From positions 1-64,000 of the IMG/VR virus record IMGVR_UViG_3300008110_000030: a stretch of DNA of 64,000 nucleotides. One strand, 5' to 3'. A program made the translations under genes and the position numbers. Below, in pieces: positions 4,664 to 24,067 of the stretch. The stretch's first letter is position 1. Every line of letters starts with the position of its first letter. Under the pieces are notes generated by a model. That model worked only from the letters and a program-made list of their open reading frames with translations. It searched no databases and had not been told where the DNA came from.

Positions 4664-4667
4664 ATAT

Positions 4668-5674: not shown

Positions 5675-6268
5675 CTAGTCGTCTAACAACAAATTGAAGT
5701 CAACTGGGATCGCTAGACGAAATCTGTCATAGTAAGGGGTTACCCAATGATACAGAAAGCAAGGAAAAACTAGTAGGTCACCTGAGTTTGGTTGGTACTC
5801 AATAGACCTAAACATTGGTTGAATTTCTTGTGGATAGCCTCTATTGGCATTCACTCTAGGGTCATCAAAAACTATTGCCCCACCGTCTGCTTGATTGTCT
5901 GCTAATAGATAAAATACTGCTGATATGTGTGATCCAGAATGATTGTGTGTATTCATGTAGTATCCCTTTGAATATCCGGCAATCCAGCCACGAATACTAC
6001 TACCAGGATAATCTTTAATATCTAGTTTAAAAACTTCTTTTAAATATCTTGAAAATGCTGGAATCACCACGTCGTCTTTAAATTTTTGGATAATTTTGGA
6101 ATCAGTATCAAAAATGTTTTCTTGTCGAATATCACTAGGTGGATTTTCTAAATCATACATTGAAAATAACTCATTAATAACATTGCCCAATAATTCTTGA
6201 TCTTTGATTGTATCTTTAATTACAGTCGTAGGCCAAAGAGAATTAATTCCTTCATTTATCAAGATCAA
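5675..6268 (-). CDS. 2OG-Fe(II) oxygenase (TIGR02466-like)
   Basis: HNHSGSHISAVFYL...DPR...HWVTPY...R. Confidence 0.8.
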   Translation of the reverse strand: MILINEGINSLWPTTVIKDTIKDQELLGNVINELFSMYDLENPPSDIRQENIFDTDSKIIQKFKDDVVIPAFSRYLKEVFKLDIKDYPGSSIRGWIAGYSKGYYMNTHNHSGSHISAVFYLLADNQADGGAIVFDDPRVNANRGYPQEIQPMFRSIEYQPNSGDLLVFPCFLYHWVTPYYDRFRLAIPVDFNLLLDD

Positions 6269-6653
6269 ACTCCTTTAAGAAATACATTTTTATATCTGGG
6301 ACAATGCCAATATCTTCATTAAAATTAAAACCCACTGCGTTCAGTATCTTGTTGTATGTATCCTTATCCTGCTCGTAGGGAACATAATATGGATCATTGC
6401 CATGTAGCAAATCAGGATCATTAAGTGATTCATAGAAATCTTCATTAAAATGCTGATTAAGCCAACGAGCATAGCATATGGCAACTACATAACTTTTAGC
6501 AGGGTAAACCCAGCCTAGTTCGTTGGTTGTAAAATACTTGATAGCATTTTCTAAGATATCATCTTTTATTTCAACCGTGTGTAAACTTAAATCATCATCG
6601 TGATCAGTATTAAGCCTGTGAAATATCTCTTGACGTATTTTCCATTCTTTCAT
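6252..6653 (-). CDS. Hypothetical protein in the radical SAM cluster
   Basis: Overlaps both neighbours; PAKSYVVAICYARWL motif. Confidence 0.75.
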   Translation of the reverse strand: MKEWKIRQEIFHRLNTDHDDDLSLHTVEIKDDILENAIKYFTTNELGWVYPAKSYVVAICYARWLNQHFNEDFYESLNDPDLLHGNDPYYVPYEQDKDTYNKILNAVGFNFNEDIGIVPDIKMYFLKEFDLDK

Positions 6654-7551
6654 AATATTCTAATAATCCTCTATAGCCGTTACAACTATTATTTAGATCC
6701 TTGACGTATCTATAATGCTCAGTTAGGCAGTGACCTTTAAACGGGCAACTTTGGCATATTGGGCTTAAACTTTTCTTTTCCTTTTCTGCCCATGTGATGT
6801 AATCGTCAAAGCTATCTAATTCTAAAAAATACTCGTTGTCATTAAGATCAAATTCTAAAACAGCAAATTTTCCGTTAGGAGTAATGTACACATGGTCATC
6901 ACTAAAACTGTTGTATATTTTATCTAAACTATCTTGTATATGATATTCATTAATAAACTCAAACTTTTTATCCACTGGACTCTCTAGCCATTTGATAACA
7001 AAGTTTTCAAAATCTCTGTGTGACACACTATGACAATTAGCTTGGTTGGTACTGTATGGTTTGATCTCAACACTGGTAATAGCAGTACACATGTTTAGTT
7101 CATTGATCATTTCATCAACATCAAGTCCAAGAACATCCTTACTGGCAAGTACCAATACTGATAGATTCTTTCTTGACTGCAACATATTATTGAATACCTG
7201 TCTACTCTTCTCCCTAGCAGTAAAATCATAACTAACACTTAGCGAGATGTCATCATCAAAAAACCAGTCGTGTATCATACTATAATTAGTGATAATGTTT
7301 ATGGCACCTGTATAATATTTTTTAATAACACGTTTGAGATCAAAAAACTCTTCACGTTTTAATACACCAATCTCTCCACCATACAAATCAACATGATCAA
7401 TTTTGGTATGTGTGACTATTTCTAACAGTTTTTCTTCTAGTTGTTTAGATGTAATGGTTTTTCTATCTTTAAGCTGATCTTTTGTCAAATAACAGAAGTT
7501 GCAACTAAAATTACAATAATAAGAAGGGTTAATGGATATGTTAATACTCAT
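6610..7551 (-). CDS. Radical SAM protein with C-terminal SPASM/twitch-type Cys cluster
   Basis: CNFSCNFC; LYGGEI; CQSCPFKGHC...C. Confidence 0.88.
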   Translation of the reverse strand: MSINISINPSYYCNFSCNFCYLTKDQLKDRKTITSKQLEEKLLEIVTHTKIDHVDLYGGEIGVLKREEFFDLKRVIKKYYTGAINIITNYSMIHDWFFDDDISLSVSYDFTAREKSRQVFNNMLQSRKNLSVLVLASKDVLGLDVDEMINELNMCTAITSVEIKPYSTNQANCHSVSHRDFENFVIKWLESPVDKKFEFINEYHIQDSLDKIYNSFSDDHVYITPNGKFAVLEFDLNDNEYFLELDSFDDYITWAEKEKKSLSPICQSCPFKGHCLTEHYRYVKDLNNSCNGYRGLLEYYERMENTSRDISQA

Positions 7552-8024
7552 GACAAATACTTTTTTAATTTTTTTAAACGGGACGTAGTTCGTTTAATGA
7601 AGTAACTTCTAACAAGCCAAGAATTATTGAAAGGAAAGGTGAATTGATTAGGATTATATACCCAAATCATAACACATTTATAATCTGTATATTGGCGAAG
7701 AAATAATTTATTAATCTCTTCAATGCCAAAATGATCAAAAGAGTGATCTATAGTTGATATAATTCTTAACTGACTTAGATCAAACATTAACTTTTTAGCT
7801 GAAGTTGATGAGTCCACTACCACAACAACATTGGCAACTGGATATTCACCGTGTGTCCCTTGACAACTGGAAATAGTCAAATATCCCAATTCTAATAATA
7901 CCTGCACTGTCTCTTTGATGCCGTCTTCTATTTCATCATAAAAATTAGCAAAATAAGGACTAACAACGATGTTGACACCATCGTCTATTTTGATTGATCC
8001 ATCACTATGTCGTTTATTGTACAT
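7548..8024 (-). CDS. Hypothetical protein, weak TYW3-like TISSCQG motif
   Basis: IEDGIKETVQVLLELGYLTISSCQG; translationally coupled to neighbours. Confidence 0.65.
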   Translation of the reverse strand: MYNKRHSDGSIKIDDGVNIVVSPYFANFYDEIEDGIKETVQVLLELGYLTISSCQGTHGEYPVANVVVVVDSSTSAKKLMFDLSQLRIISTIDHSFDHFGIEEINKLFLRQYTDYKCVMIWVYNPNQFTFPFNNSWLVRSYFIKRTTSRLKKLKKYLS

Positions 8025-9087
8025 CTTCGTTAATATACTCGGTGGCGAACATTTTATCAGTCATGCCATTGGCTTCTATAATAGAAGGCGCGAGTGCCTT
8101 CATGCGCACACAATGTGACTCTACTAGGTTAAAATCTTTTAGGTCTTTAATAGTTTTGCGACATCCATTACAAATTTCAAACATTGGACAAGTGTAGCAT
8201 GCCTGTTTTAAACTTTGTAATTCAGGCTGTACTTGTAAAGGGAAAACTTTTTTGCCTTTCATCTCTTCATCAAAATTGATTGAGTACAGTCTGTCATCAC
8301 CAAATGATCCGCAACTGTAATAATCCCCACTTGGCTGTAGTGTTCTAATACCAGCATCACATTTACGATTTTGTGGACATGACGTTGCACTGCCTCGTAA
8401 TCGTTGAACCATTTGTTTGGTATTGTATTCCCAATCAGTCAATCCAAGTTCCCAAATCTTAACATAAATTTCGTAAATCTTTGCCAACATATAAGGTTTG
8501 CCTTCTTGGCCCATTACTATGTTTTTAAATTTAACAGGAGGCCCGCTACTGAATGCGTAATTTAATTTACACTCAACATTCATTTTTTTAGCAAGTTCAA
8601 CGTTCTTAATTGCTAGGTGTTCATTTTCTTCTGAAATAACACTAATAAAATCTGGACGATAGCCAACGTGCTCTAACATAGCATCACTTACGGCCCAAAA
8701 GTCTTCCTCACTAAACTCTGTTAGGTCACCTTTTAGTCTTCCTCCACCATATTGAAAACTTGTAGTAATGCCCATGCGTTCGTGATTGAACAACTCTTTC
8801 CACTTGTTAGGGTTCTTATAAAATGGCCAAAGGTTAGATGTAAAACTTATAGTAGCACTAGACTCAATAGATTCTAAATGTTCAATAATTTTCCAATAAT
8901 AACTAGGATCCATCATTAATGGATCGCCACCATTAACAATGATAGTTTTTGTTTCTGGATATCGTTTTAAAAAGGTATAGACATATTCCAAATCTAATTC
9001 TAAAGATTTGTCTTCAGTAATATGAGTACTGCTACAGAACGTGCATTTAAAATTACATCGCTCTGTTGGTTTAATTATTAAATCCAT
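8014..9087 (-). CDS. Radical SAM/SPASM maturase (anaerobic sulfatase-maturase-like)
   Basis: IIKPTERCNFKCTFC; GGDPL; YYSCG; CYTCPMFEICNGC. Confidence 0.9.
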   Translation of the reverse strand: MDLIIKPTERCNFKCTFCSSTHITEDKSLELDLEYVYTFLKRYPETKTIIVNGGDPLMMDPSYYWKIIEHLESIESSATISFTSNLWPFYKNPNKWKELFNHERMGITTSFQYGGGRLKGDLTEFSEEDFWAVSDAMLEHVGYRPDFISVISEENEHLAIKNVELAKKMNVECKLNYAFSSGPPVKFKNIVMGQEGKPYMLAKIYEIYVKIWELGLTDWEYNTKQMVQRLRGSATSCPQNRKCDAGIRTLQPSGDYYSCGSFGDDRLYSINFDEEMKGKKVFPLQVQPELQSLKQACYTCPMFEICNGCRKTIKDLKDFNLVESHCVRMKALAPSIIEANGMTDKMFATEYINEDVQ

Positions 9088-9088
9088 G

Positions 9089-9382
9089 TTATTTTGACAA
9101 AGGACTGCCTACTTCTAAATTCCCATCGCCTCGTTCTAAACCATTTATTTGACGTATTACATCCATAATTAGATGTTTATACTTTTGTGTAGGACCTTCA
9201 AGTTCTTTAATTTTGGAATCCCAGTAGTCTCTTTTTTCTGGGATCTCCATATCTCGAACACAATTGTTAGCATACACCAAATATTCTTGACAATATATTT
9301 CACGTTGTGCTTCGTACTTTTCTTTTAAAGAAACAAGCTCTTCTGGACTAAGGGTGTCTAAATCTACTCCATGATCAATCAT
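9089..9382 (-). CDS. Hypothetical coiled-coil protein
   Basis: ORF packed within the operon. Confidence 0.65.
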   Translation of the reverse strand: MIDHGVDLDTLSPEELVSLKEKYEAQREIYCQEYLVYANNCVRDMEIPEKRDYWDSKIKELEGPTQKYKHLIMDVIRQINGLERGDGNLEVGSPLSK

Positions 9383-10995
9383 GTTATTCTCCTAAATAAT
9401 TCTGTGTATATTTCTAAATGATTTCTTTCAATAAACTCTGAAATAACTTCATTTCTTTCTCTACCGTTAATTCTCTTAATATTTCTAGCAGTTGTCTTAC
9501 TATTTAAAATATCATAGATGTCATCATATATTATTTTAAATCCGTTAAGTCCTGTAGAAATATCCCAACACATTTTGGTAAATTTCACTACATCAATATG
9601 TGCTTCAACTGCGTCATAATATTTGCCAATAAAGATATTACCTGCTATATTCATAAAAAACATCTCGCAAGCATCATCTATTGAATAAGAATAACAGTGT
9701 GAAATAGTTTTAAAGTGACTCTGACGATTAGAGTATAGCTCTCCCACTTTTACTTCCAACTCGTCAACATTATCAGTATACACGTTTACTAACTCAATGT
9801 CATATAATTTACAATAATCTGGATCATTGGCTGCACTATCTGGTAACACCATATAATCATAGCGCCAAGTTCCATTGTGTGCTTCTAATGTATAGATAAT
9901 TTCCCATTCGGCATAAAAATCTTCTAAGGTACTGCCAGGCATTCCTCGGATCAGTTCTAAAAAAGTTTTGTAACTGTATTTGTCACATTGTGTTTTGATG
10001 TGCTTACCTAACGCAATCTTGTCAGCAACTGACAAGTCTGTTCTCTTGGCCACTTTCATGGCTTCATCACTAATGCTTTGTATTCCAACATTTGGAATCA
10101 ACACTGAGCGTTGAGATTCATAGGGTTTGACTACATCAAACAATCTGTCAATTAGACGTATACGTTTTTTTAAATCTTTAGTTTTTGCTAGACTAGAATC
10201 AACAATGGCTACTCCATTTTCTTTTGCAAATTTTAATATATTAATGTCTCTGTCTTCAAACACACCAAAATTAGCATCAGCACAAACTACTTCTTTGTAT
10301 CCTGCTTGAGACAATGCTAGTAAATCATCATGTACCACTTCAACATCTTTTTTAATAATTTTTGTACCAATGCCGCCACCCCACTCACAAAATACACATG
10401 CAAATGGACAACCACGTGTGGTCTCGATTATAACATAAGGACGCATGTCATTGTCTTCTGCATATTTTTTAAGTTTTGATAGATAATCAAAATTTTGTCT
10501 GTATGCAGATGTCTTGGGAAATACCCAAGGCTTCTTTTTATAACTTCTTACTTCAAAACTAATATCTTCAATAACAGGCTTTTGATTATTTTTAAACCAG
10601 CTGTCAATGAAATCTTCCATAAACAGTTCGCCTGGACATGTAACCTTGCAAAAATAATCATACATTGGTCGTTTGTGTATTTCTTTCTCGCCAAGATGAG
10701 GACCACCAACTACAGTTATTGTTTTTGGGCTAATTTTTTTAACATACGTTGCAAGTTCATCTACTATATGATAATTCCAAATGTAAGAACTAAACATAAT
10801 GACATCAGCAGTTTTCACTTCTTCATAGATATCTTGAATAGTCTTGTATTTGTTGAATTTATATGGTGGTTCCATCCATTCAACTTGATCTTTATGTTGG
10901 CCCACTTCATCATAGTATGTTTTCATAAACATCCATGTAGCAGGATTTGACATTGAAGAATCAATTTGCGGAGGATTCACATAAGCAATACGCAT
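9379..10995 (-). CDS. Cobalamin-binding-domain radical SAM protein (class B type)
   Basis: FSSYIWN and VVGGPH (B12-binding domain); ETTRGCPFACVFCEWG; GIQS; GMPG. Confidence 0.88.
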   Translation of the reverse strand: MRIAYVNPPQIDSSMSNPATWMFMKTYYDEVGQHKDQVEWMEPPYKFNKYKTIQDIYEEVKTADVIMFSSYIWNYHIVDELATYVKKISPKTITVVGGPHLGEKEIHKRPMYDYFCKVTCPGELFMEDFIDSWFKNNQKPVIEDISFEVRSYKKKPWVFPKTSAYRQNFDYLSKLKKYAEDNDMRPYVIIETTRGCPFACVFCEWGGGIGTKIIKKDVEVVHDDLLALSQAGYKEVVCADANFGVFEDRDINILKFAKENGVAIVDSSLAKTKDLKKRIRLIDRLFDVVKPYESQRSVLIPNVGIQSISDEAMKVAKRTDLSVADKIALGKHIKTQCDKYSYKTFLELIRGMPGSTLEDFYAEWEIIYTLEAHNGTWRYDYMVLPDSAANDPDYCKLYDIELVNVYTDNVDELEVKVGELYSNRQSHFKTISHCYSYSIDDACEMFFMNIAGNIFIGKYYDAVEAHIDVVKFTKMCWDISTGLNGFKIIYDDIYDILNSKTTARNIKRINGRERNEVISEFIERNHLEIYTELFRRIT

Positions 10996-11606
10996 TACGA
11001 GTCTCTTACAGTTTTATCTAATACTATATTGTCGCCTAAATATAAATCAATTGGCATAGCAATACGCAGTCTAGATGTGTACCCTTGGACATGATGAAAA
11101 GTGTAGCTGGGAAATATTAGATAATCTCCTGTGCTTGGCATGTGAATCTCAGTATTAAAAAACTTTTGAAAATGATCATCATAGCCTCTATGACTGTTTC
11201 CTCTAGGATCAGTAAACACTATCTCTCCGCCTTGGGCATTATTCTCTGCCATTAGATAATATACTGATCCAATTTGGGATCCGCTATGGCTGTGAGATAC
11301 CATGCCTAGTCCATCTTTGTAACTGGCAATCCAGCTTCTTAGTCTATAGTTAGGATAGTTTTCAAGTGATGTTTCATACACCTTATTCAAATATTCTTCA
11401 AAGTTAGGTATAACAACTTCTTCCCTAAATTTAGTGATAGTTTTATCACTATCATAAATCATATCAACCCAGCCAAGATCGTTTGGGCCTACGTTCAAAT
11501 CATACGTTGAAATAATTTTATCTGCCAAGTCGTTTATTAACGTAGCATTGTCAACATTGCCTACTTGTATAAATGTAGGCCAACAAATGTTTAGGCCCTT
11601 GTTCAT
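10995..11606 (-). CDS. 2OG-Fe(II) oxygenase (TIGR02466-like)
   Basis: HSHSGSQIGSVYYL...DPR...HHV...R. Confidence 0.8.
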   Translation of the reverse strand: MNKGLNICWPTFIQVGNVDNATLINDLADKIISTYDLNVGPNDLGWVDMIYDSDKTITKFREEVVIPNFEEYLNKVYETSLENYPNYRLRSWIASYKDGLGMVSHSHSGSQIGSVYYLMAENNAQGGEIVFTDPRGNSHRGYDDHFQKFFNTEIHMPSTGDYLIFPSYTFHHVQGYTSRLRIAMPIDLYLGDNIVLDKTVRDS

Positions 11607-13234
11607 TTTATTCTTCCAAATAGTTCATTCATTATGAGCAGTTTGTTACTTGCAACCCATCGTGGAATAGCTTCAGTTCTAACTACCCCATTTATAGTGT
11701 TAATATTTCTAGCTGGGGTGTCTGGATTCAGTATATCTTTTACTTCAGCATATATCTCATCAAAGCCATCTACTGTTTTAAGAATTTCCCAACAGTGTTT
11801 GGCAAACTGTGAAACTGTTACTGAATCTTTAAAAAGATCATACATCTCACGTATCAAATTATTACCTGCAAAATTCATAAAAAACATTTCAGCGACGTCT
11901 TCTCTTGAAAAAGAATAGCTACTAGCAACTGTCTTATAGAATGTTCTACGATTTTTAAATAATCCGCCAGTGTTGGCAATGTCTTGTTCATCTACATTAT
12001 CAGTGTAGACATCGACTAATTCAATAGCATAAATTTCTTGATAAACTGGATCGCTGATCTCACTATCAGGTAATGCCATTAAGTCATACCGCCAACTAGA
12101 CCATGCGCCTAAATCATAAAATAGTTCCCACTCGGCATAAAAATCTTCTAAGGTACTCCCAGGCATGGCCATAATCAGTTCCATGCCTGGATGGTAATCA
12201 TATTTGGCGCACAAGTCACGCATGTACTTGCCTAGTTTAATTTTGTCTGATACTTTCATATCAGTCCGCTTGGCCACTTTCATAGCTTCATCACTAATAC
12301 TTTGTATACTAATGTTAGGAACTATGGCAGCTCTATCTTTTCGTCCAAAAGGCTGTATGATTTCAAAGAAGCTATCAACTAGTCTTTTTCTTCTTTCGTA
12401 ATCTTTTGTTTTAACTTGGCTTATATCAATAAAGGTTAGTCCTGCGTCCTTGGCAAACTTTAGAAGTCCTAAATCACGTTCTTCAAAAACCCCAAAATTA
12501 GCGTCAGCACAGATTGCTTCAGTAAACCCTGCTTCTACAATAGCAACACAATCTCGTTGTGCCCACTCTACTTCTTTTTTAATAATCTTGCCACCAATAC
12601 CACCACCCCACTCACAGTAGGTACAACTAAACGGACAGCCTCTGGTAGTTTCAATAACCATCATCAGTTCCATTTCATTTTCTATACCATAGGCACTGAT
12701 CTTTTTTAGATAGTCTAAATTTTCTTCATACGCACTTGCTAGAGGAAACTCCCAACGCTGTTGTTTAGTAGAGCGCACTTCGTAAGTTATATCACTTGCA
12801 TCAAGTTTATTTTCAATAAACAGATCTAGAACGTCCTTAACAAAGAACTCTCCTGGAAACATAGGACGTAATATATAATCGTACATACTACGTTTGATCC
12901 ACAGTGCAGGATCCTTTGCCCCAATCATTGGACCGCCCAACAAATTTATTACAGACGGGTTCTGTTGTTTAGCGTATTGTGCTATTTGATCAACTAGGTC
13001 ATAATTCCAAACATAACTGCTGAACATTATGATATCAGCATCTTTTATCAGTTCATATATTTCTTCAATGCTTTGGTATTCGTTGTACTTGTAAGGAGGC
13101 TCTAACCACTCTACTTGATCAGAGTATTTTCCATTATGTTGGTAGAAACTCTTGCATAGCATCCATGTGACTGGGTTGATTAAACTCCAGTCGGCATGTG
13201 GCGGATTGATAAACGCTATTTTGATTCTTTTCAT
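11603..13234 (-). CDS. Cobalamin-binding-domain radical SAM protein, paralog of 9379
   Basis: FSSYVWN, LLGGPM, ETTRGCPFSCTYCEWG. Confidence 0.88.
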   Translation of the reverse strand: MKRIKIAFINPPHADWSLINPVTWMLCKSFYQHNGKYSDQVEWLEPPYKYNEYQSIEEIYELIKDADIIMFSSYVWNYDLVDQIAQYAKQQNPSVINLLGGPMIGAKDPALWIKRSMYDYILRPMFPGEFFVKDVLDLFIENKLDASDITYEVRSTKQQRWEFPLASAYEENLDYLKKISAYGIENEMELMMVIETTRGCPFSCTYCEWGGGIGGKIIKKEVEWAQRDCVAIVEAGFTEAICADANFGVFEERDLGLLKFAKDAGLTFIDISQVKTKDYERRKRLVDSFFEIIQPFGRKDRAAIVPNISIQSISDEAMKVAKRTDMKVSDKIKLGKYMRDLCAKYDYHPGMELIMAMPGSTLEDFYAEWELFYDLGAWSSWRYDLMALPDSEISDPVYQEIYAIELVDVYTDNVDEQDIANTGGLFKNRRTFYKTVASSYSFSREDVAEMFFMNFAGNNLIREMYDLFKDSVTVSQFAKHCWEILKTVDGFDEIYAEVKDILNPDTPARNINTINGVVRTEAIPRWVASNKLLIMNELFGRIK

Positions 13235-13244
13235 AGATTACACT

Positions 13245-13273
13245 ATTATACAACATAAAGTTAACAATTACAA
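13245..13273 (-). promoter_or_regulatory. Internal sigma70-like promoter before the B12 radical SAM pair
   Basis: TTGTAA-17 nt-TATAAT with TG in the spacer. Confidence 0.5.
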
Positions 13274-13783: not shown

Positions 13784-13784
13784 C

Positions 13785-15946: not shown

Positions 15947-16491
15947 TATGTGATCCTATTATATTGGTCTACATAAGATTCGTAACCATCAGTGTTAATA
16001 TACAGATCAAAAGGAAGACATAGTCTTGTTCCTGGACCTTGGTGTGTCAAAACTTCGTGTCCAAGATAACTTGGAAAAATTAAAAGATCGCCTGGCTCTG
16101 GGTGTATTTCAACTGGACTAAACCAGCTTTGATTAATATTGATCTGTTGTGTGGGCGGATGTAAAACAATCTCGCCTCCAGATGCCGTTTGGAGATAAAA
16201 TATCCCTGACAACCAGCCCCAAGGATGCCAATGCCATCGAGCACTATTGCCTGGTTCAATATACAACATGTTGCCGTTTAATTTTACTTCTGCATTTTTT
16301 GGCAACTCTTCCTTCCAGGTTTCAGAAACAGCACTCATGATTTTCTCATAAAGTTTTTCAGTAAACTCATCAGTGTCTTTGAACCATTTATTTTCATGCT
16401 GGCACACAACATTACTTTGAAACATAAGATTTACTAAATCTTCATTCCCGTGTTCATAGTGTATTTTGGTTGGCCAAATTTCTTTTTTCAT
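15946..16491 (-). CDS. 2OG-Fe(II) oxygenase (TIGR02466-like)
   Basis: WHWHP..LSGIFYL...FPSYLGHEV...R. Confidence 0.8.
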   Translation of the reverse strand: MKKEIWPTKIHYEHGNEDLVNLMFQSNVVCQHENKWFKDTDEFTEKLYEKIMSAVSETWKEELPKNAEVKLNGNMLYIEPGNSARWHWHPWGWLSGIFYLQTASGGEIVLHPPTQQININQSWFSPVEIHPEPGDLLIFPSYLGHEVLTHQGPGTRLCLPFDLYINTDGYESYVDQYNRIT

Positions 16492-17471
16492 TTTCTCAAT
16501 ACGTAATGCTGTAGGCTTACGTTTCCTAAGATAGTATTTACTGATATATCTTGATAGGTTTCTAAAATATGGTCCAAGAAGTAGACATTAAAATATTTTC
16601 TACCAAAATCTGAAAATGATGTTTGTCCAAGATTATGCAAATTGTATTGGATAATCGCATTTAAGTCTTCATCACTAATACTATCTTTTCTAATAATTGG
16701 TATCAAATTTAATTTAGTAACACACGGGTTCTCAGAATTAGAATGCACCCAACTGCCTAAAAAGTTAGAGCAATTTTCTACAAAATTAGATGAAAATTTC
16801 TCGTCATCAAAACATTGCCAGCTGAAAGACCCAGTTTTGAATACTTCAAAAAACCATGCTAGATTTGGATCACATATTAAATTCTCTAAATTTTTATATG
16901 TGTATTTTTTTGTTTTCAACAATTGTTGCAATTTTGTCTTAGCAGAATTAAGTAAAATTGTGTCACGTGTTTCTTCTATAAAGTTTTGCATATCCTTTTT
17001 TACAAGTTTATGCAATACGTTTTTTAATTCTTCTTTAAATGATTGGTTATAAAGATAGGAAGTTAATAAAAATTCAAAACTGATATCTTCTAAAAAATCA
17101 CAAGTATCCAATTTTTCTACACTGTCATATATGATGTTGTAGTCATCTTCTTTTATTACAGTGTCTTTTAATACATCAACACTCTTATCTAAACCAATTA
17201 ATTGATTTTCTTTTAATAGATGACATTTTAGAATCGTATAACATGATTCTGAAGTGGGAAATGCAAAAACTGACTTGTGCCATTGTGCTACAAGTTTAAT
17301 GAACAAAGTTTTGTCAGCAACAATGACAAGTTTTTTGTTATTCTTGATACAATTTAATTTAGCAATTAGTAAAAGTTCAAGCAGATCGATATCTTCAGTT
17401 GCAGTAATACTATTGAAATCTGAAGATGGATATTTAAAATCTATATAAACTTTCTTAAAAAGATGTAGCAT
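16488..17471 (-). CDS. Orphan protein, MLHLF-family paralog 2
   Basis: N-terminus MLHLFKKVYI. Confidence 0.75.
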   Translation of the reverse strand: MLHLFKKVYIDFKYPSSDFNSITATEDIDLLELLLIAKLNCIKNNKKLVIVADKTLFIKLVAQWHKSVFAFPTSESCYTILKCHLLKENQLIGLDKSVDVLKDTVIKEDDYNIIYDSVEKLDTCDFLEDISFEFLLTSYLYNQSFKEELKNVLHKLVKKDMQNFIEETRDTILLNSAKTKLQQLLKTKKYTYKNLENLICDPNLAWFFEVFKTGSFSWQCFDDEKFSSNFVENCSNFLGSWVHSNSENPCVTKLNLIPIIRKDSISDEDLNAIIQYNLHNLGQTSFSDFGRKYFNVYFLDHILETYQDISVNTILGNVSLQHYVLRK

Positions 17472-17477
17472 TGCATG

Positions 17478-18662
17478 TTAAATCGGGAGTACGAATCCAT
17501 TTAACTTATTTTTTTCATCTTTCACTACACATCGGGTAATATAGTTTATTAGTGGCATATTAAATTTAGTGAGATCAATTCCCCCGAATTGACAGGCTGG
17601 ATCAGCGATTGGTCCAGATAGTTGTGTTTGTATTACAAAATCAAGATCACTATCTGTAAATTGATTTGAAATAACAATATCAAACATTCTGAATATATCA
17701 TTTTTCCAAATGGTAGCTCTAGGTCCTAGGTTTTCAATGTCGTCAAATAACCATAAACGTTTCCAATGGAATTCTAAATGAGATTTTAATTTTTGGAACT
17801 GGCTCGCAGTCAATTTTTCAAATTGAAATTCTGAATAAGAAGTGTGTGCAACTGGCACACCTTGAACTCCCCAAAGCGTACTATCAAACCAGATGTCAAA
17901 TGCCGGGTCCAAAGCTATTGTGTCTAGATTACCTAGATCATATGAGCCAGTGGGGGTACACTCTTCGGCCATACTGTTGTTGCTCAATAATTGACGCAAC
18001 ATAAATGCCTTTGCCTCATACACATATTGTTGAGCACCAAACTTCAATGTAGTTTTTAAAATATTTTTAATGATATCTTTATGTGTACCATTGACAAAGT
18101 AGGAAGCTAATAGATATTCAAAACTTATTGTAGGTGTAATTAAAGAAACAAACCCATCATAAACACCAGTTTCAACAACAGTGGAGTTATACTGTGCGTG
18201 AAACTCTTGTGGGCTCACATAGTGTTCAATTTGTGTTTGTCTATACGGGCGTGTGAAACTGTTATTGACACTTTGGGTAATACCAAACATTCTAGTCATG
18301 AACATGGAACTTGACACAAGACCATATGCATCATCTGGTGTGGCATTAGGCAAAATTATTTTGATCCACTTGGATGTCAGTTTTAAGTAAGTGTCTCTGT
18401 CACAATAGATAACAATTCTAGAATTGTAGCTGTCAGCTTTTCGATTGACATCATTTAAAAATAATAAAAAATTAGCATATTTTTTATCTGGACCAATCAA
18501 TTCGTCTAAGTTTCTAGCAAATGCGATAAGATCAGAATGTACCACTCCAGCCAGATCATGTAATAGATCAACACCATTTTCTTGTGAAATCACATACCTA
18601 TTGACGTTTAGATCGATTGAATCGTCTAAATCTAAATAAACTCTTTTAAACAAGTGGAACAC
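17478..18662 (-). CDS. Orphan protein, MLHLF-family paralog 3
   Basis: GTG start at 18662 with AAGGAG RBS gives MFHLFKRVYL. Confidence 0.75.
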   Translation of the reverse strand: MFHLFKRVYLDLDDSIDLNVNRYVISQENGVDLLHDLAGVVHSDLIAFARNLDELIGPDKKYANFLLFLNDVNRKADSYNSRIVIYCDRDTYLKLTSKWIKIILPNATPDDAYGLVSSSMFMTRMFGITQSVNNSFTRPYRQTQIEHYVSPQEFHAQYNSTVVETGVYDGFVSLITPTISFEYLLASYFVNGTHKDIIKNILKTTLKFGAQQYVYEAKAFMLRQLLSNNSMAEECTPTGSYDLGNLDTIALDPAFDIWFDSTLWGVQGVPVAHTSYSEFQFEKLTASQFQKLKSHLEFHWKRLWLFDDIENLGPRATIWKNDIFRMFDIVISNQFTDSDLDFVIQTQLSGPIADPACQFGGIDLTKFNMPLINYITRCVVKDEKNKLNGFVLPI

Positions 18663-19359
18663 TTTGAATCTCCTTGATATCTTTTTCCATTGCTTCAACG
18701 AAGGCGTCAGGATTAAACTGATCTGTAACAATTGCCCAAGTTAGAATGAAAATAGGATTGTTTGGGTTGGCCCAGTAATGGTATAAGTTCTTTCCCTTAA
18801 AAATATAATCGTTAAAATATACTTCGTGATACTTAAAACTATTTTGATCTACAGTGGTGTAGAAATCATAAAAATCATCATATTTCAACAAGGATACAAA
18901 ATTAATTCCAATAACCAAGTTGTTATCAAATTTTGGAGCCTGCTTAATTTGTTCTTTATAATTGTCGTCGTTGATTGAATATGTATTAAAATATAACAGA
19001 CTATCTAATATGCTAGCCCATACATTTAATTGTTCTTTGTTAGCACTAATAAACTCAGTATAACCAAAGTCATTTACTCCCTTATATTGGAGTAACATGC
19101 GAATAGCTTCTTTTTCTAAAAAAGGAATATTAACTAAAAATGGTGAATTTAAATAATCAAGTAATAATCCATCAGCTAATTCAGTATGCGCTTCTAATTT
19201 AATGTCAGATGGAATATCTAAATTACTCAAATAGGTCAGTAACTTCGTTCCTTTTAGATCGCTGTTTGCATAATCAATAAGATAAAACGTGTCCTTATCA
19301 GTAAAGTATTTTTTTAATTCTTCAATTTTAATTGGCGCCGTTGTTTCAATAATTTTCAT
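18646..19359 (-). CDS. Hypothetical protein next to the candidate substrate
   Basis: ATGA overlap with the upstream gene. Confidence 0.75.
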   Translation of the reverse strand: MKIIETTAPIKIEELKKYFTDKDTFYLIDYANSDLKGTKLLTYLSNLDIPSDIKLEAHTELADGLLLDYLNSPFLVNIPFLEKEAIRMLLQYKGVNDFGYTEFISANKEQLNVWASILDSLLYFNTYSINDDNYKEQIKQAPKFDNNLVIGINFVSLLKYDDFYDFYTTVDQNSFKYHEVYFNDYIFKGKNLYHYWANPNNPIFILTWAIVTDQFNPDAFVEAMEKDIKEIQSVPLV

Positions 19360-19961
19360 CTTCTACCTCTTGAGTTATGGCAGTTGCTATGACAACTGAC
19401 ATGACAAACTTCTTTATAATATGTGGTTCCATCATCACCTAAAATGTTGGGTCTAAGGGTTTGATATACTTGGCTCATGCTAAGAATAAAATTGTTTAGA
19501 TTTCCTCTAGAAATAATGCTATTTGCTTGTATGTCAAAATAGTTGTTGATCGTTGTAGGTTGTTCACCGTCAGCAGTAATGGCAATTCTAGTTAGGTCAA
19601 CGTTACTAGCAGTTGACGTATATGGACTTCCTGGGGCAGGTCTATTACCACCGCCACCTGTAACTTTCCTAACACATCGTATATTTCTAATTCTAGTATA
19701 ATACTGAATAATTTGACGAACACCTTCAGTTAGTGAATCAGCTTCAATTCGTTCAAGAGAACCATAACCAGCGTCAACTGATACTGGATCTAAACCTGCC
19801 CAGTCAGTACGATGAGCAAACCAGCCAGTATCTGCTTCAGGAAATGGTTTGATGTTTGTGCCCCAAACAATACCGGTTTTGGCAACACCGTTAATTTGTT
19901 CAATTGTACGTTGTACAAGGGTTAATCGTCTAATTGGTCCTGGATTCTCTAATGCTGGCAT
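19356..19961 (-). CDS. Candidate radical SAM substrate with C-terminal (Cys-His-x-x)3 motif
   Basis: Ends CHVSCHSNCHNSRGRR; directly downstream of a SPASM radical SAM gene. Confidence 0.75.
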   Translation of the reverse strand: MPALENPGPIRRLTLVQRTIEQINGVAKTGIVWGTNIKPFPEADTGWFAHRTDWAGLDPVSVDAGYGSLERIEADSLTEGVRQIIQYYTRIRNIRCVRKVTGGGGNRPAPGSPYTSTASNVDLTRIAITADGEQPTTINNYFDIQANSIISRGNLNNFILSMSQVYQTLRPNILGDDGTTYYKEVCHVSCHSNCHNSRGRR

Positions 19962-19962
19962 G

Positions 19963-21018
19963 TTAAATTTCCTTGATTATGAACACTTTGTTGTTCTTTT
20001 TAGTATTTATGTTTTCTAACTCTAGCATCAAACTCTTTGGAGCCCCGCACACTTCCCCTTGCCACTCTAGTTGATGGCAATCTCCACCGCATTTATGAAA
20101 TACTGCACAGTCATAACATCTTGGATCCATGTTGCGTTCACAAGCCATGTTTTCCAATCTGCGCTCGCTAGTTAACAATACAGATAATTCGTCGTTGATA
20201 TGGCCAAACTGTTGCTCAGGAGCACTATTTGGGCATCCAGATATGGTCCCATCAGCGTTTAATGTGAATAATTTTTCTTCGCAATCTCTACAAAAAGTTC
20301 CACCACGAGTAAGATTGTGTTCAAACTTAGAATATACTGTTTCTAAAAACTCATTATTAAACCAAGTTCTGGCATTGTGCTGTTCACTCAAATGGTGCAT
20401 GTTTAAAAACCAAGCATCTTGTTCTTTATTAGTTGGGAATATATCAGGATATAGTCTAGCGTTTCCGTTGTTGGTCAATCGCTCTAAACTCATCTCTTTA
20501 ACACCTAAATCCCTAATCCACTCTAACAAGTCGAACGGATTCATTTTTACTGTTCCACTAGTAACACTTATGAACAGTTTAATTTCAACTCCTAAATCTT
20601 GTAAAGTTTGTAAATTCTTTCGCCATAAGTCATATTGTTTAGGATTGGCAAATCTAATATCTGGATCCCAACTAGTTCCAATTCTATTGCCTAGTGGACC
20701 TTGAATAAATGCAATAATTTCTGGAGTAAGTTTAAAAACTAAATTAGTAGTAACTCCCCAAGTCATATAGGGCCAAATATCTTTACATTGATCGTAAACA
20801 TATTGCATGGTACTTAGGTCAGCTAGAAAAGGTTCTCCACCATGGAATTCACAATGAACGTGTGGACTATCTGGAATTGCTTGTCCAAGCCTACCTAACC
20901 AATCTGCAACCTTGACGTGATCCCAGTAAATCTTTGCTCCGTTGGTTCCGCTAAAACAATGCTTGCAATTTAGGTTGCAAGTTTCTGTTGTTTTAAGGTA
21001 AATGCTTAATTCTTTCAT
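19963..21018 (-). CDS. Radical SAM/SPASM maturase
   Basis: LKTTETCNLNCKHC; FHGGEP; CRDC, GCPN, CYDCAVFHKCGGDC; start moved to ATG 21018 (ATGA overlap). Confidence 0.9.
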   Translation of the reverse strand: MKELSIYLKTTETCNLNCKHCFSGTNGAKIYWDHVKVADWLGRLGQAIPDSPHVHCEFHGGEPFLADLSTMQYVYDQCKDIWPYMTWGVTTNLVFKLTPEIIAFIQGPLGNRIGTSWDPDIRFANPKQYDLWRKNLQTLQDLGVEIKLFISVTSGTVKMNPFDLLEWIRDLGVKEMSLERLTNNGNARLYPDIFPTNKEQDAWFLNMHHLSEQHNARTWFNNEFLETVYSKFEHNLTRGGTFCRDCEEKLFTLNADGTISGCPNSAPEQQFGHINDELSVLLTSERRLENMACERNMDPRCYDCAVFHKCGGDCHQLEWQGEVCGAPKSLMLELENINTKKNNKVFIIKEI

Positions 21019-21473
21019 TGTAACCCAATGCTTATTGCCCACGTGTCCTTTTGATTGAACACACGGTGCTTGTGACCTTTTGGAATAGCCACACTGTCGC
21101 CCGACTTTAAGACGTACGTCTTGTTTTTAATTTGCACTCTTTTATGTCCCCTAATAACATACAGCATTACATTTGTGGTATCATGATGCCAACCAAAACT
21201 ATAATCAGTTTTGGGACTATAAAATAGATGAATATCTTTAATCTTATGTTTACTAAAATACTTTTTAATATGCGGGTTCTTTTCTAACCCTTCAACTTTA
21301 ATAGCAGAGTATTTACTAATACTATCTACATATTGAGAGTATGATAATTTTTGATTGGCATACCAAGACCACATGGTATGACCTGTCCTATCAATAACAA
21401 CGATTTCGTTATTGTCAAAATGCTCAAATGAAATTATTTCTTCTTTGAGCATTTTGTAAAGACTTTTTACCAC
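21015..21473 (-). CDS. JmjC/cupin-like 2OG oxygenase
   Basis: GWHHDTTNV...G.K...L..GD...IPKG..H. Confidence 0.75.
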   Translation of the reverse strand: MVKSLYKMLKEEIISFEHFDNNEIVVIDRTGHTMWSWYANQKLSYSQYVDSISKYSAIKVEGLEKNPHIKKYFSKHKIKDIHLFYSPKTDYSFGWHHDTTNVMLYVIRGHKRVQIKNKTYVLKSGDSVAIPKGHKHRVFNQKDTWAISIGLQ

Positions 21474-22381
21474 TTGATAAAACCTCGACTATACCCTTCA
21501 GGACGATTAACACCATCTTCAAATGCCTGGCGCCATTCTGTATTTCTATCATATCCCTTAGTCCAAAATTGACTAACATCTAAGTCCCCACGCTCAATCC
21601 AACTCACAGCCAGTTTCATACAATTGTGGAATGTTTTAGCACGTGGGCTTGGCATAATGATAGTCACGGCCTTCCAAAGTAAGCTACCAAAGTTTGTTAC
21701 AAGTGCAGGCTTCTTTTCACAAGCCATAATCCAAAGAGCACCTGGAGCAAGTAAATCTTGTTCAATTACTAGATTGTTTTCTCTGATGTCTATAATAACA
21801 TCATACTGTTCATATTGAGGTTTATCAACTAGAACCCCATTGTACTTTTGCCACATGTCTTGATTACTGCTACCAACAACTTCAATACTCGCAAACTCTA
21901 CATGTGTCAAAGATAGTGTATGATAAGCAATCCAAGCAAGAAATCCACTGCCAATAATCAAACAACGACTTTCTGGACCACTACGGTCACACACAGCACG
22001 TAGATCTTGTTCAACTAAATTGATACCGCAAGCAACTGGTTCAATAATGTATTTTGGATCTGCTTCTGGAACACTAACCCATTCATTTATTTTTACATTA
22101 TAAAAGTCTGCATACGCAGGCTCACCACGTGTGGCTATGAAATCGCCTTCTTTGATTCCACCAACGTCTGCACCGACCCTAGTCACTTGACCAAGTCCTT
22201 CATGTCCTTGCATGTGTAATGGCAGTGGTCCAAACTCACCGCGCATCATGGCAATGTCACTACGACAAACGCCGGTCATTACTGCTTTGACTTCAATCTC
22301 GTTTGGTAAAGGTTCGGGCTTCTCCCAAATTTGTTCTTTGAAAGCCCCATTGCTGTCTGTGTAAAGTAGTCTAGTTTTCAA
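21467..22381 (-). CDS. Zn-dependent alcohol dehydrogenase superfamily protein
   Basis: GVCRSD and GHEGLG motifs. Confidence 0.85.
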   Translation of the reverse strand: MKTRLLYTDSNGAFKEQIWEKPEPLPNEIEVKAVMTGVCRSDIAMMRGEFGPLPLHMQGHEGLGQVTRVGADVGGIKEGDFIATRGEPAYADFYNVKINEWVSVPEADPKYIIEPVACGINLVEQDLRAVCDRSGPESRCLIIGSGFLAWIAYHTLSLTHVEFASIEVVGSSNQDMWQKYNGVLVDKPQYEQYDVIIDIRENNLVIEQDLLAPGALWIMACEKKPALVTNFGSLLWKAVTIIMPSPRAKTFHNCMKLAVSWIERGDLDVSQFWTKGYDRNTEWRQAFEDGVNRPEGYSRGFIKW

Positions 22382-23265
22382 AACTTTTCAATCCTTTCAT
22401 GTATCCACATGTCCAATTCATATTGTTTCCCCCAAAAGTCATTATTACCTACATTACTGATAGCAACATCAATCATGTTCTTATATGCTTCTTCTGGGCA
22501 TAAGCCTAATTCAAAACGACGAACAGTTCCGTCTGACATTTCAAATTCTACTGCTCGGTTATCTGCCACACCATCCGCCCAGTTTGCTTCCATTTTCCAA
22601 ATACGACCATTTTGCATGTATTTGATTTTGCAAACGTCATCTACATCATATATACCATCACGTTTAACTACACCATACTCAGTGTCTTCAATTTTATCCA
22701 ATGTGTGTTTTTGTCTTGCTTCATGACCCGTAATAGTAGCAGTTCTCCAATTGTCATTTAGTGCAACATACAGACTAAGCAAGTGTGGCATAAGGTCTCT
22801 GCTGACGCCTCCATAGGATAGTTCTTTAGTTGTGAACCAAGTACCAGGACCTGGGATTCTATTTTTATTAACCCATTTGATTTTCACAGTACGTGCATCT
22901 GCAACACATTTACGCATTTCTTCAATGTTGTCACGGAACATATTGTTCTTGACCATTATGAATCGAGTGTTTGGAAAATCCTCAGTTAAGCACTGCCAGC
23001 ATTTGGCATCTTGCAAACCAGGCTTTTCAATAAAAACAATTTTAGCAACCTTTGCCACTCGCCTTGCTATTTCTTCATGTGTAAAGTTTGGTGTACAGAT
23101 ATGTGCTGTGGCAAATGGGCCATGTGCTAAAAATGCTGATTCAACTGTGGGCAAGTCAGCACGTTTGCCAATATCACTATCTACTGTAACCACATCAATT
23201 TTTAATTCTTCTAGCACTTTCTTATAGAGAGACCCAATTCCCATACCCACCACTAGGCTTTTCAT
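22378..23265 (-). CDS. Gfo/Idh/MocA family oxidoreductase
   Basis: GMGIG Rossmann start, ICTPNFTH, FIEKP. Confidence 0.8.
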   Translation of the reverse strand: MKSLVVGMGIGSLYKKVLEELKIDVVTVDSDIGKRADLPTVESAFLAHGPFATAHICTPNFTHEEIARRVAKVAKIVFIEKPGLQDAKCWQCLTEDFPNTRFIMVKNNMFRDNIEEMRKCVADARTVKIKWVNKNRIPGPGTWFTTKELSYGGVSRDLMPHLLSLYVALNDNWRTATITGHEARQKHTLDKIEDTEYGVVKRDGIYDVDDVCKIKYMQNGRIWKMEANWADGVADNRAVEFEMSDGTVRRFELGLCPEEAYKNMIDVAISNVGNNDFWGKQYELDMWIHERIEKF

Positions 23266-24040: not shown

Positions 24041-24067
24041 AAACACTCCAAATTGTTCAGTATCGCT

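Follow-up and report, generated by a model that had tools for sequence, protein, structure and literature searches.

The bacterial HXS antiphage system (HxsA-D; Nat Commun 2026, PMC13128918) uses several radical SAM (rSAM) enzymes and a small partner to mature a protein rather than a short peptide. The functional element of this protein is a run of His-x-Ser repeats rich in basic residues, the modification maps to an HxS motif (+8 Da on SHRSS), and the matured protein acts at the phage/cell-envelope interface. SPASM-type peptide and protein maturases such as PapB (ranthipeptides), CteB (SCIFF), DarE/DynA, QhpD and anSME carry a CxxxCxxC motif plus C-terminal auxiliary-cluster motifs of 7-8 Cys; freyrasin contains repeated Cys-x3-Asp units, and QhpD cross-links a protein subunit, QhpC. 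Three-residue cyclophane ("triceptide") synthases, including the His-forming HtkB/HaaB (PMC11499958), are rSAM/SPASM enzymes that link an aromatic residue, including His C2, to the β-carbon of the residue two positions on, often in repeated motifs. In proteusin-type pathways (polytheonamides), an rSAM epimerase, B12-rSAM C-methyltransferases and an Fe/2OG hydroxylase act on a precursor with a large leader. Here, we compared these systems with a gene cluster on a 64,000-nucleotide stretch of an IMG/VR virus record (IMGVR_UViG_3300008110_000030, positions 1 to 64,000; referred to as the window).

A first-pass annotation had described 21 co-oriented, mostly overlapping genes at 5675-23265, comprising four rSAM enzymes with C-terminal Cys clusters, two B12-domain rSAMs, four 2OG-Fe(II) oxygenases plus a JmjC-like one, two NAD-linked oxidoreductases, three paralogous orphans and a Cys/His-tailed protein, with another related oxygenase at 2065. 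This observation was confirmed: the ORF listing showed 21 minus-strand ORFs from 5675 to 23265, followed by two further co-oriented ORFs (23262-23735 and 23732-24145), giving 23 tightly packed genes of the enzyme classes named, with most junctions overlapping by 1-17 nt or leaving gaps of 1-33 nt. The likely operon start is a perfect TTGACA-17-TATAAT (12/12) at 24096-24068 on the minus strand, followed by GGAG and an ATG at 24040, so that the unit probably extends slightly beyond the originally reported coordinates. This candidate promoter of the whole minus-strand unit is a consensus match only, and the total number of promoter-like sites in the region was not above that in shuffled sequences. 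All features described below are on the minus strand unless stated otherwise.

The cluster is not one indivisible 21-gene pathway. Comparison with four cultured jumbo phages, 80 IMG/VR loci and eight MAG contigs revealed a syntenic core in the order cupin oxygenase (CUP), rSAM R1, protein X, P237, an orphan (Or), rSAM R2, R3, R4 and t133. This order recurs in Atu_ph07, Phosso, RSL2 and pPa_SNUABM_DT01, and in 56 complete loci among the 84 analyzed, 80 of them from IMG/VR, which is far beyond chance; a rearranged architecture keeps the same core, with X genes nearby. Independent assortment of the genes across genomes, which had been named beforehand as an outcome that would speak against a common system, was therefore not observed, as a core of about nine genes keeps its order across three unrelated cultured jumbo-phage lineages and dozens of metagenomic phages. 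Only part of the 17.6 kb is the conserved system. B12-rSAMs occur in 24 of 56 complete loci (26 tails, because three loci carry two X genes), and the numbers of 2OG oxygenases, of orphan paralogues and of a fifth rSAM family vary. The two NAD-type oxidoreductases are lineage-specific neighbours: the Zn-ADH-like gene (21467-22381), of which only the GroES-like N-domain was detected (ADH_N), recurs only in the closest relative (locus L006), and the weakly assigned GFO/IDH/MocA-like gene (22378-23265, 22 bits, below the Pfam cut-off) matched none of the fetched loci. The orphans y1 (23262-23735) and y2 (23732-24145) are likewise lineage-specific; y2 probably starts at 24040, has a hydrophobic N-terminal helix, had no homologue in the other loci and is not part of the conserved core.

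Of the core enzymes, CUP (21015-21473) is a cupin/JmjC-like putative Fe(II) oxygenase (Pfam Cupin_2, 4e-11; JmjC_2, 1e-9) that is always located directly upstream of R1; its H96-x-D98...H136 and K111 are at least 90% conserved in 56 homologues. Radical_SAM/Fer4_12 domains were identified in R1 (19963-21042), R2 (13785-14807), R3 (8014-9087) and R4 (6610-7551). The four enzymes are mutually distant; their catalytic and auxiliary-cluster Cys are at least 90% conserved, with 8 conserved C-terminal Cys in R1 (in addition to CxxxCxxC) and R3, 6 in R2 and 4 in R4, the latter representing a single auxiliary-cluster motif. R1, whose true start is probably the ATG at about 21018, scored 30.7 bits against the TIGR04085 SPASM domain (cut-off 27), and proteins 47-49% identical to it occur in jumbo phage isolates. 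R3 is the most conserved core gene, with 57-62% identity to the cultured jumbo-phage homologues. R1 and R3 align over their full length to PapB, DarE and DynA (E 1e-13 to 1e-10), which are the best full-length NCBIfam hits of R1, and to anSME; the R1 profile retrieved anSME and CteB from the PDB, and the nearest solved relatives of the two enzymes are anSME, CteB and SuiB. However, no NCBIfam equivalog cut-off was reached (about 50 bits against 340-650 for the SPASM maturases), and, in contrast to these maturases, there is no N-terminal RRE domain, four different enzymes are always present together, and the candidate substrate, which has regularly spaced Cys next to the enzyme gene, is a folded 100-300-aa virion protein with an invariant tail. 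With regard to the triceptide synthases, R1 and R4 gave only weak hits to YhhB, XyeB, AmcB and GrrM models (E 1e-5 to 1e-3). Against the HxsB/HxsC models, the rSAMs of the window scored only 22-28 bits with cut-offs of 268-370.

The remaining genes are orphans or further enzymes. P237 (18646-19359; phrog_20767) is a conserved orphan that follows X in the main architecture; its AF2 model (pLDDT 79) gave no fold match in the PDB, and no Pfam or PDB sequence hit was found. The orphan t133 (6252-6653; phrog_20737) is a core gene in both architectures. The three orphans Or1 (14804-15946), Or2 (16488-17471) and Or3 (17478-18731) are weak paralogues (22-23% identity, E 1e-8 to 1e-12) that share the N-terminal motif MLHLFxKVY; in Or3 the motif begins at residue 24, so the true start is probably later than the listed one. 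Most related loci have a single member of this family between P237 and R2. The orphan u158 (7548-8024) is present in a minority of loci, and the small orphan s97 (9089-9382) was found only in the window and L006. 2OG-Fe(II) oxygenases (2OG-FeII_Oxy_5, PF13759, above cut-off) are encoded at 5675-6268, which is the usual last gene of the cluster, and, as accessory genes, at 10995-11606 and at 15946-16491, the copy number varying between loci; a further one lies outside the cluster at 2065-2658 on the plus strand. The accessory gene Ox4 (13268-13783) encodes a divergent 2OG-oxygenase-like protein that hit 2OG-FeII_Oxy_3 only weakly (20.3 bits, cut-off 27). Two accessory B12-binding rSAM paralogues are present, paralogue a (11603-13234, below the Pfam cut-off but 52% identical to its paralogue) and paralogue b (9379-10995, above the cut-off and distantly KedN5-like, with 107 bits against a cut-off of 700). 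With its SPASM-type rSAMs, two B12-rSAMs, several 2OG oxygenases and a precursor with a large N-terminal domain and a C-terminal part proposed to be modified, the window's phage combines the enzyme classes of proteusin pathways, but a nitrile-hydratase-like or Nif11 leader, a dehydratase, an N-methyltransferase and a protease are missing, the presumed core is invariant, and the B12-rSAMs and extra oxygenases are dispensable in many lineages.

The key to the cluster is protein X (19356-19961, 201 aa), the proposed substrate and virion component. Its C-terminal tail (19359-19406) reads CHVSCHSNCHNSRGRR-stop, i.e. the units CHVS, CHSN and CHNS followed by RGRR. While the body of X diverges (29% column identity on average), the family almost always ends in CHxS-CHxS-CHxS-RxRR-stop: the tail was CHx[S/N]x3 plus RxRR-stop in 60 of 60 distinct locus sequences and in 143 of 150 representatives that were at most 50% identical. 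Synonymous sites vary freely and Ser uses both codon families, so selection acts on the peptide. Some loci carry tandem X copies, and one X has four repeats, which are substrate-like features; R1 is translationally coupled to X in nearly all loci. The tail contains three HxS units and ends in RxRR, reminiscent of the HXS system, and H-x-S/N fits the three-residue pattern of triceptides, although the invariant Cys before each His has no counterpart there. HxsA, in contrast, has a signal/processing region and a peptidoglycan-binding domain, lacks Cys in its repeat and is matured with two rSAMs, not four or more; HXS is a defence system encoded by bacteria, 99.7% of them Pseudomonadota, whereas the system here is phage-encoded and its product is in the virion. 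X gave no Pfam, NCBIfam or PADLOC hit. Of 185,579 species genomes, only eight MAG/uncultured contigs carried the tail, and all eight carried cluster genes beside X (a near-complete core where the length of the contig allows; one of them, L090, holds only the two X genes). The X family comprises 847 clusters at 50% identity, and R1 1136 clusters at 90% identity, on contigs of up to 354 kb.

Tail-fibre-like genes flank the cluster in 54 of 84 loci (55 when the other two structural families are counted), and a tail-fibre-assembly-like gene follows it in 35; in the window itself, however, the cluster is not next to fibre genes and sits behind the sigma-70-like consensus promoter. In published virion proteomics of Atu_ph07, the X orthologue gp170 (31.9 kDa) was present with eight unique peptides and 35% coverage and was most abundant in gel slice 1, the top of the gel, whereas the enzymes were absent from that list, with none of gp164-169, gp171 or gp172 included. 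This evidence rests on one data set from one phage, and as the loading buffer contained no reductant, the high apparent mass could reflect plain disulfide bonding.

The first-pass annotation had inferred a large RiPP-like or protein-tailoring pathway, with the adjacent tRNA/ncRNA array as an alternative target; this interpretation is partly supported. The Cys/His-tailed protein is the best substrate candidate, and no characterized pathway matches the cluster: our literature search retrieved no published description, the literature listing merely "radical SAM genes". A classical RiPP pathway, in which the X body would be a long leader and the 16-residue tail would be released as a modified antimicrobial, signal or metallophore acting on the host or on competitors, would fit the enzyme classes and the precursor-like, sometimes duplicated gene next to the first rSAM, but is considered unlikely. 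No protease, exporter or RRE-like domain was detectable in any conserved gene, an invariant core across 847 family clusters is unlike RiPP diversification, the X orthologue persists as a protein in virions, and the tail lies at the extreme C-terminus after a predicted folded domain. The product is therefore more likely a matured virion protein than a released RiPP.

Modification of nucleic acid, either phage DNA (hypermodified bases) or the neighbouring tRNAs, with X as an unrelated passenger, appears very unlikely. It could be invoked because a 20-gene tRNA array lies directly downstream in the window, the best hits of R4 are viperin, MoaA and QueE models, of which viperin and MoaA act on nucleotides, RSL2-type clusters contain a DHFR gene, and rSAM enzymes take part in phage thymidine hypermodification (PMC8989533). 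However, only 6 of 55 related loci had any tRNA within about 10 kb, the typical context is tail fibres, no hydroxymethylase, kinase, transferase, glycosylase or nucleic-acid-binding domain was detectable in the cluster, and the R4 hits are weak, cover the rSAM core only and lie far below cut-offs (33 bits against 180). The tRNA-target idea is thus not supported.

A more serious, though still doubtful, alternative is that X is not a substrate but a metal- or iron-sulfur-binding partner, either as a fibre or needle tip or as a dedicated electron donor or scaffold for the rSAM enzymes, which would then act on tail fibres, another virion protein or a small molecule. Phage lambda gpL binds a 4Fe-4S cluster, and the T4 gp37 and P2 gpV tips bind iron through His. 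The fixed spacing of three Cys and three His, the presence of X but not of the enzymes in the virion, the adjacent fibre genes and the number of rSAMs (4-9 per locus), which is high for one short tail, are in line with this view. On the other hand, the Ser/Asn position and the terminal RxRR are as invariant as Cys and His, which metal binding alone does not explain, R1 is coupled to X, an electron-donor role does not fit a virion protein with 35% coverage, and the HXS precedent shows rSAM modification of an HxS motif.

We consider it somewhat more likely than not that the region is a phage-specific protein-maturation module, composed of CUP, R1-R4, t133, usually P237 and Or, and X, in which rSAM/SPASM enzymes plus oxygenases mature the C-terminal tail of a virion protein. 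The gene content and its conservation, the near-invariance of the tail and its selection at the peptide level, the phage-only distribution, the tail-fibre neighbourhood and the virion presence of one orthologue were established by the analysis, whereas the substrate role of X, the type of chemistry and the role in the virion are inferred, with no direct evidence that any enzyme touches X. The tail was modelled with low confidence only, the number of rSAMs leaves room for other substrates (the X body, fibres or a small molecule), and an invariant core with a variable body is the reverse of typical RiPP logic and would also fit a metal- or Fe-S-binding tail that needs no modification. In the proposed mechanism, X folds into a domain of about 170 residues and exposes a flexible (C-H-x-S)x3-R-x-R-R tail, in which the SPASM-type enzymes would abstract hydrogen atoms in the infected cell and install several carbon-sulfur and/or carbon-carbon or carbon-nitrogen cross-links, for example Cys-to-Ser/Asn thioethers or His-x-Ser three-residue rings. 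The cupin and, in some lineages, the extra 2OG oxygenases would add hydroxyl groups, and in lineages such as the window's phage the two B12-dependent rSAMs would add methyl groups. Many large phages share a conserved set of four rSAM enzymes and an oxygenase that most likely chemically matures a structural protein, which, in the literature searched, has not been described for any virus; the matured X would remain a protein and be built into the virion, probably in the tail-fibre/baseplate region, where its rigid, cationic, possibly metal-binding or covalently linked tail would serve adsorption, assembly or genome delivery.

The open reading frame (ORF) listing showed 21 minus-strand ORFs between 5675 and 23265, and two further co-oriented ORFs extended the block to 24145. 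Most neighbors overlap by a few bases or are separated by 1-33 nt. The GC skew changes sign at approximately 24 kb, where the gene orientation flips. GC content of the core cluster (6001-20000) is 32-36%, versus 37-44% in the rest of the window, which is compatible with a horizontally acquired cassette; the part with the alcohol dehydrogenase-like and GFO-like genes (20-24 kb) has the GC content of the flanks. A perfect sigma-70 consensus on the minus strand at 24096-24068 is followed by GGAG and an ATG at 24040, marking a plausible operon start, and two near-consensus promoters lie just after the end of the cluster, ahead of a tRNA array; these are pattern matches only.

Pfam searches identified four radical SAM (rSAM) proteins, referred to as R4 (6610-7551), R3 (8014-9087), R2 (13785-14807), and R1 (19963-21042), and two B12-binding rSAM paralogs that are 52% identical to each other. 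Of the latter, the product of 9379-10995 scored 34.6 bits for PF02310 (cut-off 32.1) and also hit Radical_SAM, whereas that of 11603-13234 scored 26.8 bits, below the cut-off, but is 52% identical to the first. Both have the domain order of class B (cobalamin-dependent) enzymes, an N-terminal B12-binding domain followed by an rSAM core, with methyl transfer only inferred; similarity to the KedN5 subfamily is distant (107 bits against a cut-off of 700). Three clear 2OG-Fe(II) oxygenases (PF13759, 47-59 bits, cut-off 27) were accompanied by a weak one below the cut-off (13268-13783), by a related one at 2065-2658 on the plus strand, and by a cupin (CUP; Cupin_2 42.8 bits against 27.2, JmjC_2 38.2 against 22), in addition to an ADH_N protein and a weak GFO/IDH/MocA protein. 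Three orphans are distant paralogs sharing an MLHLFxKVY start, and a 201-aa protein (X, 19356-19961) ends in CHVSCHSNCHNSRGRR. Thus, the co-oriented block of rSAM and oxygenase genes described in the first-pass annotation was confirmed, including the enzyme classes named there.

The window is the first 64 kb of a 214.6-kb IMG/VR viral contig, and window proteins outside the cluster hit phage protein families. The phage encodes a full-length DnaK/Hsp70 (39562-41451, plus strand) with 65-68% identity to the top-scoring DnaK-encoding records, and an AAA/Lon-like protease-related protein (30454-31674, plus strand). A class I SAM-dependent methyltransferase (25190-26146, plus strand) lies just across the divergent promoter region from the cluster but has no conserved link to it in other loci. 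Megablast of the 17.6 kb against 50,697 phage records gave no match, and relatives were visible only at the protein level. There, R1 and R3 each found the same 15 records, about a dozen isolates, comprising the Ralstonia/Burkholderia RSL2/RSF1/FLC/SURPRISE13 group, Agrobacterium Atu_ph07 with Sinorhizobium Phosso, and Pseudomonas pPa_SNUABM_DT01. In these genomes the same genes lie in the same order, with X represented by gp170 in Atu_ph07, gp068 in RSL2, and gp065 in DT01. A scan of IMG/VR with R3 confirmed 265 relatives, of which the best 80 loci were analyzed.

Annotation of all loci against the window's proteins gave one dominant order, CUP-R1-X-P237-Or-R2-(B12/Ox)-R3-(Ox/u158)-R4-t133-Ox, in which P237, Or, u158, and t133 are orphans and Ox denotes 2OG oxygenases. 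In a second architecture, Ox(-) CUP-R1-R3-R4-t133-R2, short tandem X genes lie a few kb away, next to an array of further genes that turned out to be a fifth rSAM family of about 350 aa with CxxxCxxC near the N terminus. This family accompanies the module in 16 loci (among them the loci numbered L003, 18937-20968; L062, 11808-19132; L053, L063, L073, and L069), with one to five copies in the complete loci, so that one locus has nine rSAM genes; it is absent from the window. In 56 complete loci R1-R4 and X are always present, and CUP was detected in 51 of them. B12-rSAMs occur in 24 of these loci, and oxygenase genes number one to seven, whereas Atu_ph07 and Phosso have no extra oxygenase at all. 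In the RSL2-type version a dihydrofolate reductase gene is inserted between R2 and R3 (16072-16608 in locus L002, RSL2 gp073, and in FLC/SURPRISE13 relatives). The ADH gene recurs only in the closest relative (L006), and the GFO-like gene and the two orphans y1 and y2 matched none of the fetched loci. Independent assortment, which had been named beforehand as a refuting outcome, was therefore not observed for the core but holds for the accessory genes.

X is a protein family and not only a tail, as conserved blocks run through its sequence; even so, the only invariant columns apart from the start Met are in the last 16 residues. All 60 distinct X sequences from the loci end in C-H-x-S-C-H-x-S/N-C-H-x-S/N/A-R-x-R-R-stop. 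A profile search of 1.84 billion representatives found 847 family clusters with E of 1e-3 or better. Of the 150 best, which are at most 50% identical to each other, 143 have exactly three CHxx units, nearly all of them followed by RxRR at the very end, and Cys, His, and the three Arg are invariant across all 138 canonical tails. In 57 distinct tail-coding 48-mers, second codon positions of the invariant residues never vary, third positions carry about 1 bit of entropy, and Ser uses both AGY and TCN codons. Selection therefore acts on the peptide and not on a nucleic acid signal. Some phages have two X genes in tandem, one X has four repeats, and some have long Gly-rich N-terminal extensions. 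In the tails of loci L006-L082, position 11 is mostly Gly where no B12-rSAM is present (23 of 35 tails) and mostly Ser or Asn where one is (18 of 26 tails), which may be phylogenetic signal only and is not interpreted here. Heme-c-like CX3CH, glycyl-radical, and sulfatase CxPxR readings of the tail were considered and dropped as unsupported. The AF2 model of X (pLDDT 75, pTM 0.67) is an alpha/beta domain with a low-confidence tail; it had no fold match in the PDB (best E 0.85) and found only uncharacterized viral orthologs in BFVD.

A scan with the tail pattern of one genome for each of 185,579 bacterial and archaeal species found only eight X-encoding loci, all on MAG or uncultured contigs with cluster genes beside X. 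R1 has 1136 clusters at 90% identity, all metagenomic and generically named, on contigs up to 354 kb. The module is in effect phage specific and common.

R1-R4 fulfill the sequence criteria of the rSAM superfamily, a CxxxCxxC motif for the SAM-binding 4Fe-4S cluster and a GGE-type SAM motif, with C22/C26/C29 and GGE68-70 in R1, C28/32/35 and GGE in R2, C11/15/18 and GGD in R3, and C13/17/20 and GGE in R4; the B12-rSAM carries C196/200/203. All are at least 90% conserved in 26-76 homologs (66-76 for R1-R4), as are C-terminal Cys residues numbering 8 in R1, 8 in R3, 6 in R2, and 4 in R4. The same conservation holds for H96-x-D98...H136 of CUP, a putative iron triad from which use of 2OG can only be inferred. 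With the SPASM model TIGR04085 (cut-off 27), which describes a C-terminal Cys-rich domain for one or two auxiliary 4Fe-4S clusters, R1 scored 30.7 bits and R3 25.0 bits, just below; R3 and R2 qualify by motif, and R4 is twitch-like. No rSAM reached an NCBIfam equivalog cut-off, the best scores being 24-51 bits against cut-offs of 131-650 for PapB, DarE, DynA, anSME, CteB-type SCIFF, HxsB/C, triceptide synthase, viperin, and MoaA models. R1 and R3 aligned over their full length to PapB, DarE, DynA, and anSME models at about 40-51 bits, R2 hit HxsB and HxsC best but only over the core, and R4 hit viperin and MoaA best. Single-sequence PDB searches with R1-R4 found nothing, and only profiles of R1 and R4 reached distant SPASM enzymes, namely anSME, CteB, and SuiB, which are all peptide- or protein-modifying. 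Defense or anti-defense typing by PADLOC gave only generic viperin-core hits.

X, P237, Or, and t133 had no Pfam, NCBIfam, or PADLOC hit, u158 had no Pfam or PHROG hit, and PHROG gave only unnamed families. Profile searches of P237, Or, and t133 against PDB sequences found nothing credible, and the AF2 model of P237 (pLDDT 79) had no PDB fold match. Of the features of RiPP clusters, no RRE/PqqD-like recognition domain, leader protease, or exporter was found with Pfam, NCBIfam, or PHROG in any cluster protein, and R1-R4 lack an N-terminal recognition domain and start directly at the CxxxCxxC motif, although t133, P237, and Or could hide such a function. A RiPP cluster would have a short precursor with a recognition (leader/follower) part and a variable core; X proteins are 99-309 aa with a predicted folded domain, a conserved helix precedes the tail, and the candidate modified part is invariant, not variable. 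A released RiPP is considered an unlikely alternative.

An array of 20 tRNA genes lies directly downstream of the cluster (206-4743, minus strand; also 55819-59030). Asn, Asp, and Glu tRNAs occur at both ends of the array (390-1185 and 4504-4743), which suggests a segmental duplication, two tandem tRNA-Leu(taa) genes lie at 58799-59030, and the 2OG oxygenase ORF at 2065-2658 sits inside the array. However, tRNA genes lie within about 10 kb in only 6 of 55 loci, and a tRNA target, the alternative raised in the first-pass annotation, was rejected on context. None of the domains of phage thymidine hypermodification clusters (dUMP hydroxymethylase, 5-hmdU DNA kinase, and amino acid:DNA transferase) occurs among the 23 cluster proteins. 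Nucleic acid modification is therefore given very little weight among the explanations.

In 54 of 84 loci the cluster is flanked by members of a BLAST cluster of long proteins, of which the members tested hit PHROG tail-fiber and virion structural families (55 of 84 when two further structural families are counted). In 35 loci a small gene matching 'L-shaped tail fiber protein assembly' follows the cluster, and in RSL2 and DT01 the genes directly upstream are virion/tail proteins. At the equivalent place, after two tail-like YomR genes, the RSL2 relatives RP12 and RP31 of Ralstonia carry a different cluster with a 537-aa rSAM, an anSME-like Fe-S oxidoreductase, a MoaA-like rSAM, and an MgoB-like protein (PMC5468394, supplementary table 2), and the locus next to tail genes may be a general hot spot for rSAM cassettes.

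In the published ESI-MS/MS analysis of gel slices from Atu_ph07 virions (Table S5), the X ortholog gp170 (296 aa, listed mass 31.89 kDa) was found with eight unique peptides and 35% coverage in slices 1-9 and was most abundant in slice 1, where proteins of 87-127 kDa peak; this evidence comes from one phage and a PEG-purified stock. The neighboring fiber-like gp176 and gp177 were also found, whereas none of the enzymes or orphans (gp164-169, 171, 172) is listed. As the loading buffer contained no reducing agent, the high apparent mass may reflect disulfides, other covalent links, or a stable oligomer.

The simplest account of the co-inheritance, the R1-X coupling, the peptide-level invariance of an exposed C-terminal tail, the SPASM character of the enzymes, and the virion presence of X but not of the enzymes is a protein-maturation module for a structural protein. 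While the gene content and its conservation, the invariance of the tail and its selection at the peptide level, and the virion presence of one ortholog are observed, the role of X as substrate, the chemistry, including hydroxylation and methyl transfer, and the role in the virion are inferred. We consider this overall model somewhat more likely than not, place much more confidence in a conserved functional module centered on X, and much less in any specific cross-link. The alternative that X carries a metal-binding or Fe-S tail, with the enzymes acting elsewhere, remains possible but is regarded as less likely. The interpretation in the first-pass annotation, a large RiPP-like or protein-tailoring pathway, was partly supported.

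The chemistry is inferred by analogy. Regularly spaced Cys recall thioether-forming SPASM systems, and H-x-S/N matches the three-residue pattern of cyclophane synthases, some of which use His. The bacterial HXS system shows that rSAM enzymes do modify an HxS motif in a protein effector (+8 Da on SHRSS). The cupin and the PF13759 enzymes would hydroxylate, and the B12 enzymes would methylate. Membership in HXS, defined by an HxsB and HxsC pair, HxsD, and HxsA with HxS repeats and a peptidoglycan-binding domain in the order D-B-C-A, was rejected on scores and architecture, as HxsB/HxsC models scored 22-28 bits (cut-offs 268-370), X matches no family, and four rSAMs are present in a different gene order; only the HxS-repeat idea is shared. 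On this reading the module would work like SPASM-dependent peptide or protein maturation, and conceptually like HXS, but it fits none of the named maturase families or systems with which it was compared.

Papers on the isolates only note 'radical SAM', 'cupin', and '2OG oxygenase' genes of unknown role, and full-text literature searches found no description of the tail motif or the system. While rSAM maturation of peptides and of a few cellular proteins is known, a conserved multienzyme rSAM module dedicated to a virion protein has not been described; what would be new here is the setting, the candidate substrate family, and the partners. In a more far-reaching view, which we consider possible but doubtful, X may be the first virus structural protein whose working part is built by rSAM chemistry, carrying a multiply cross-linked, hydroxylated and methylated, cationic Cys/His/Ser 'warhead' on the tail apparatus that is covalently or metal-linked into a high-mass complex and needed for adsorption or genome delivery. 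It would then be the phage-side counterpart of the bacterial HXS effector, an rSAM-matured HxS-repeat protein that blocks DNA entry, and the lineage-specific oxygenases, B12-rSAMs, and extra rSAM paralogs (up to nine rSAMs per locus) would diversify the warhead chemically in an arms race.

The module is common in environmental large phages, with hundreds of X family clusters, and is present in about a dozen cultured jumbo phages of Ralstonia, Burkholderia, Agrobacterium, Sinorhizobium, and Pseudomonas, which makes the question directly accessible with existing isolates and proteomics data. Its elucidation would define new enzyme chemistry on a simple, invariant 16-residue motif, assign functions to three orphan phage protein families, and explain why oxygen-labile rSAM enzymes and oxygen-dependent oxygenases are kept together in phages of aerobes. 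It would possibly also reveal a new principle of tail or adsorption-apparatus assembly that mirrors a bacterial defense system.
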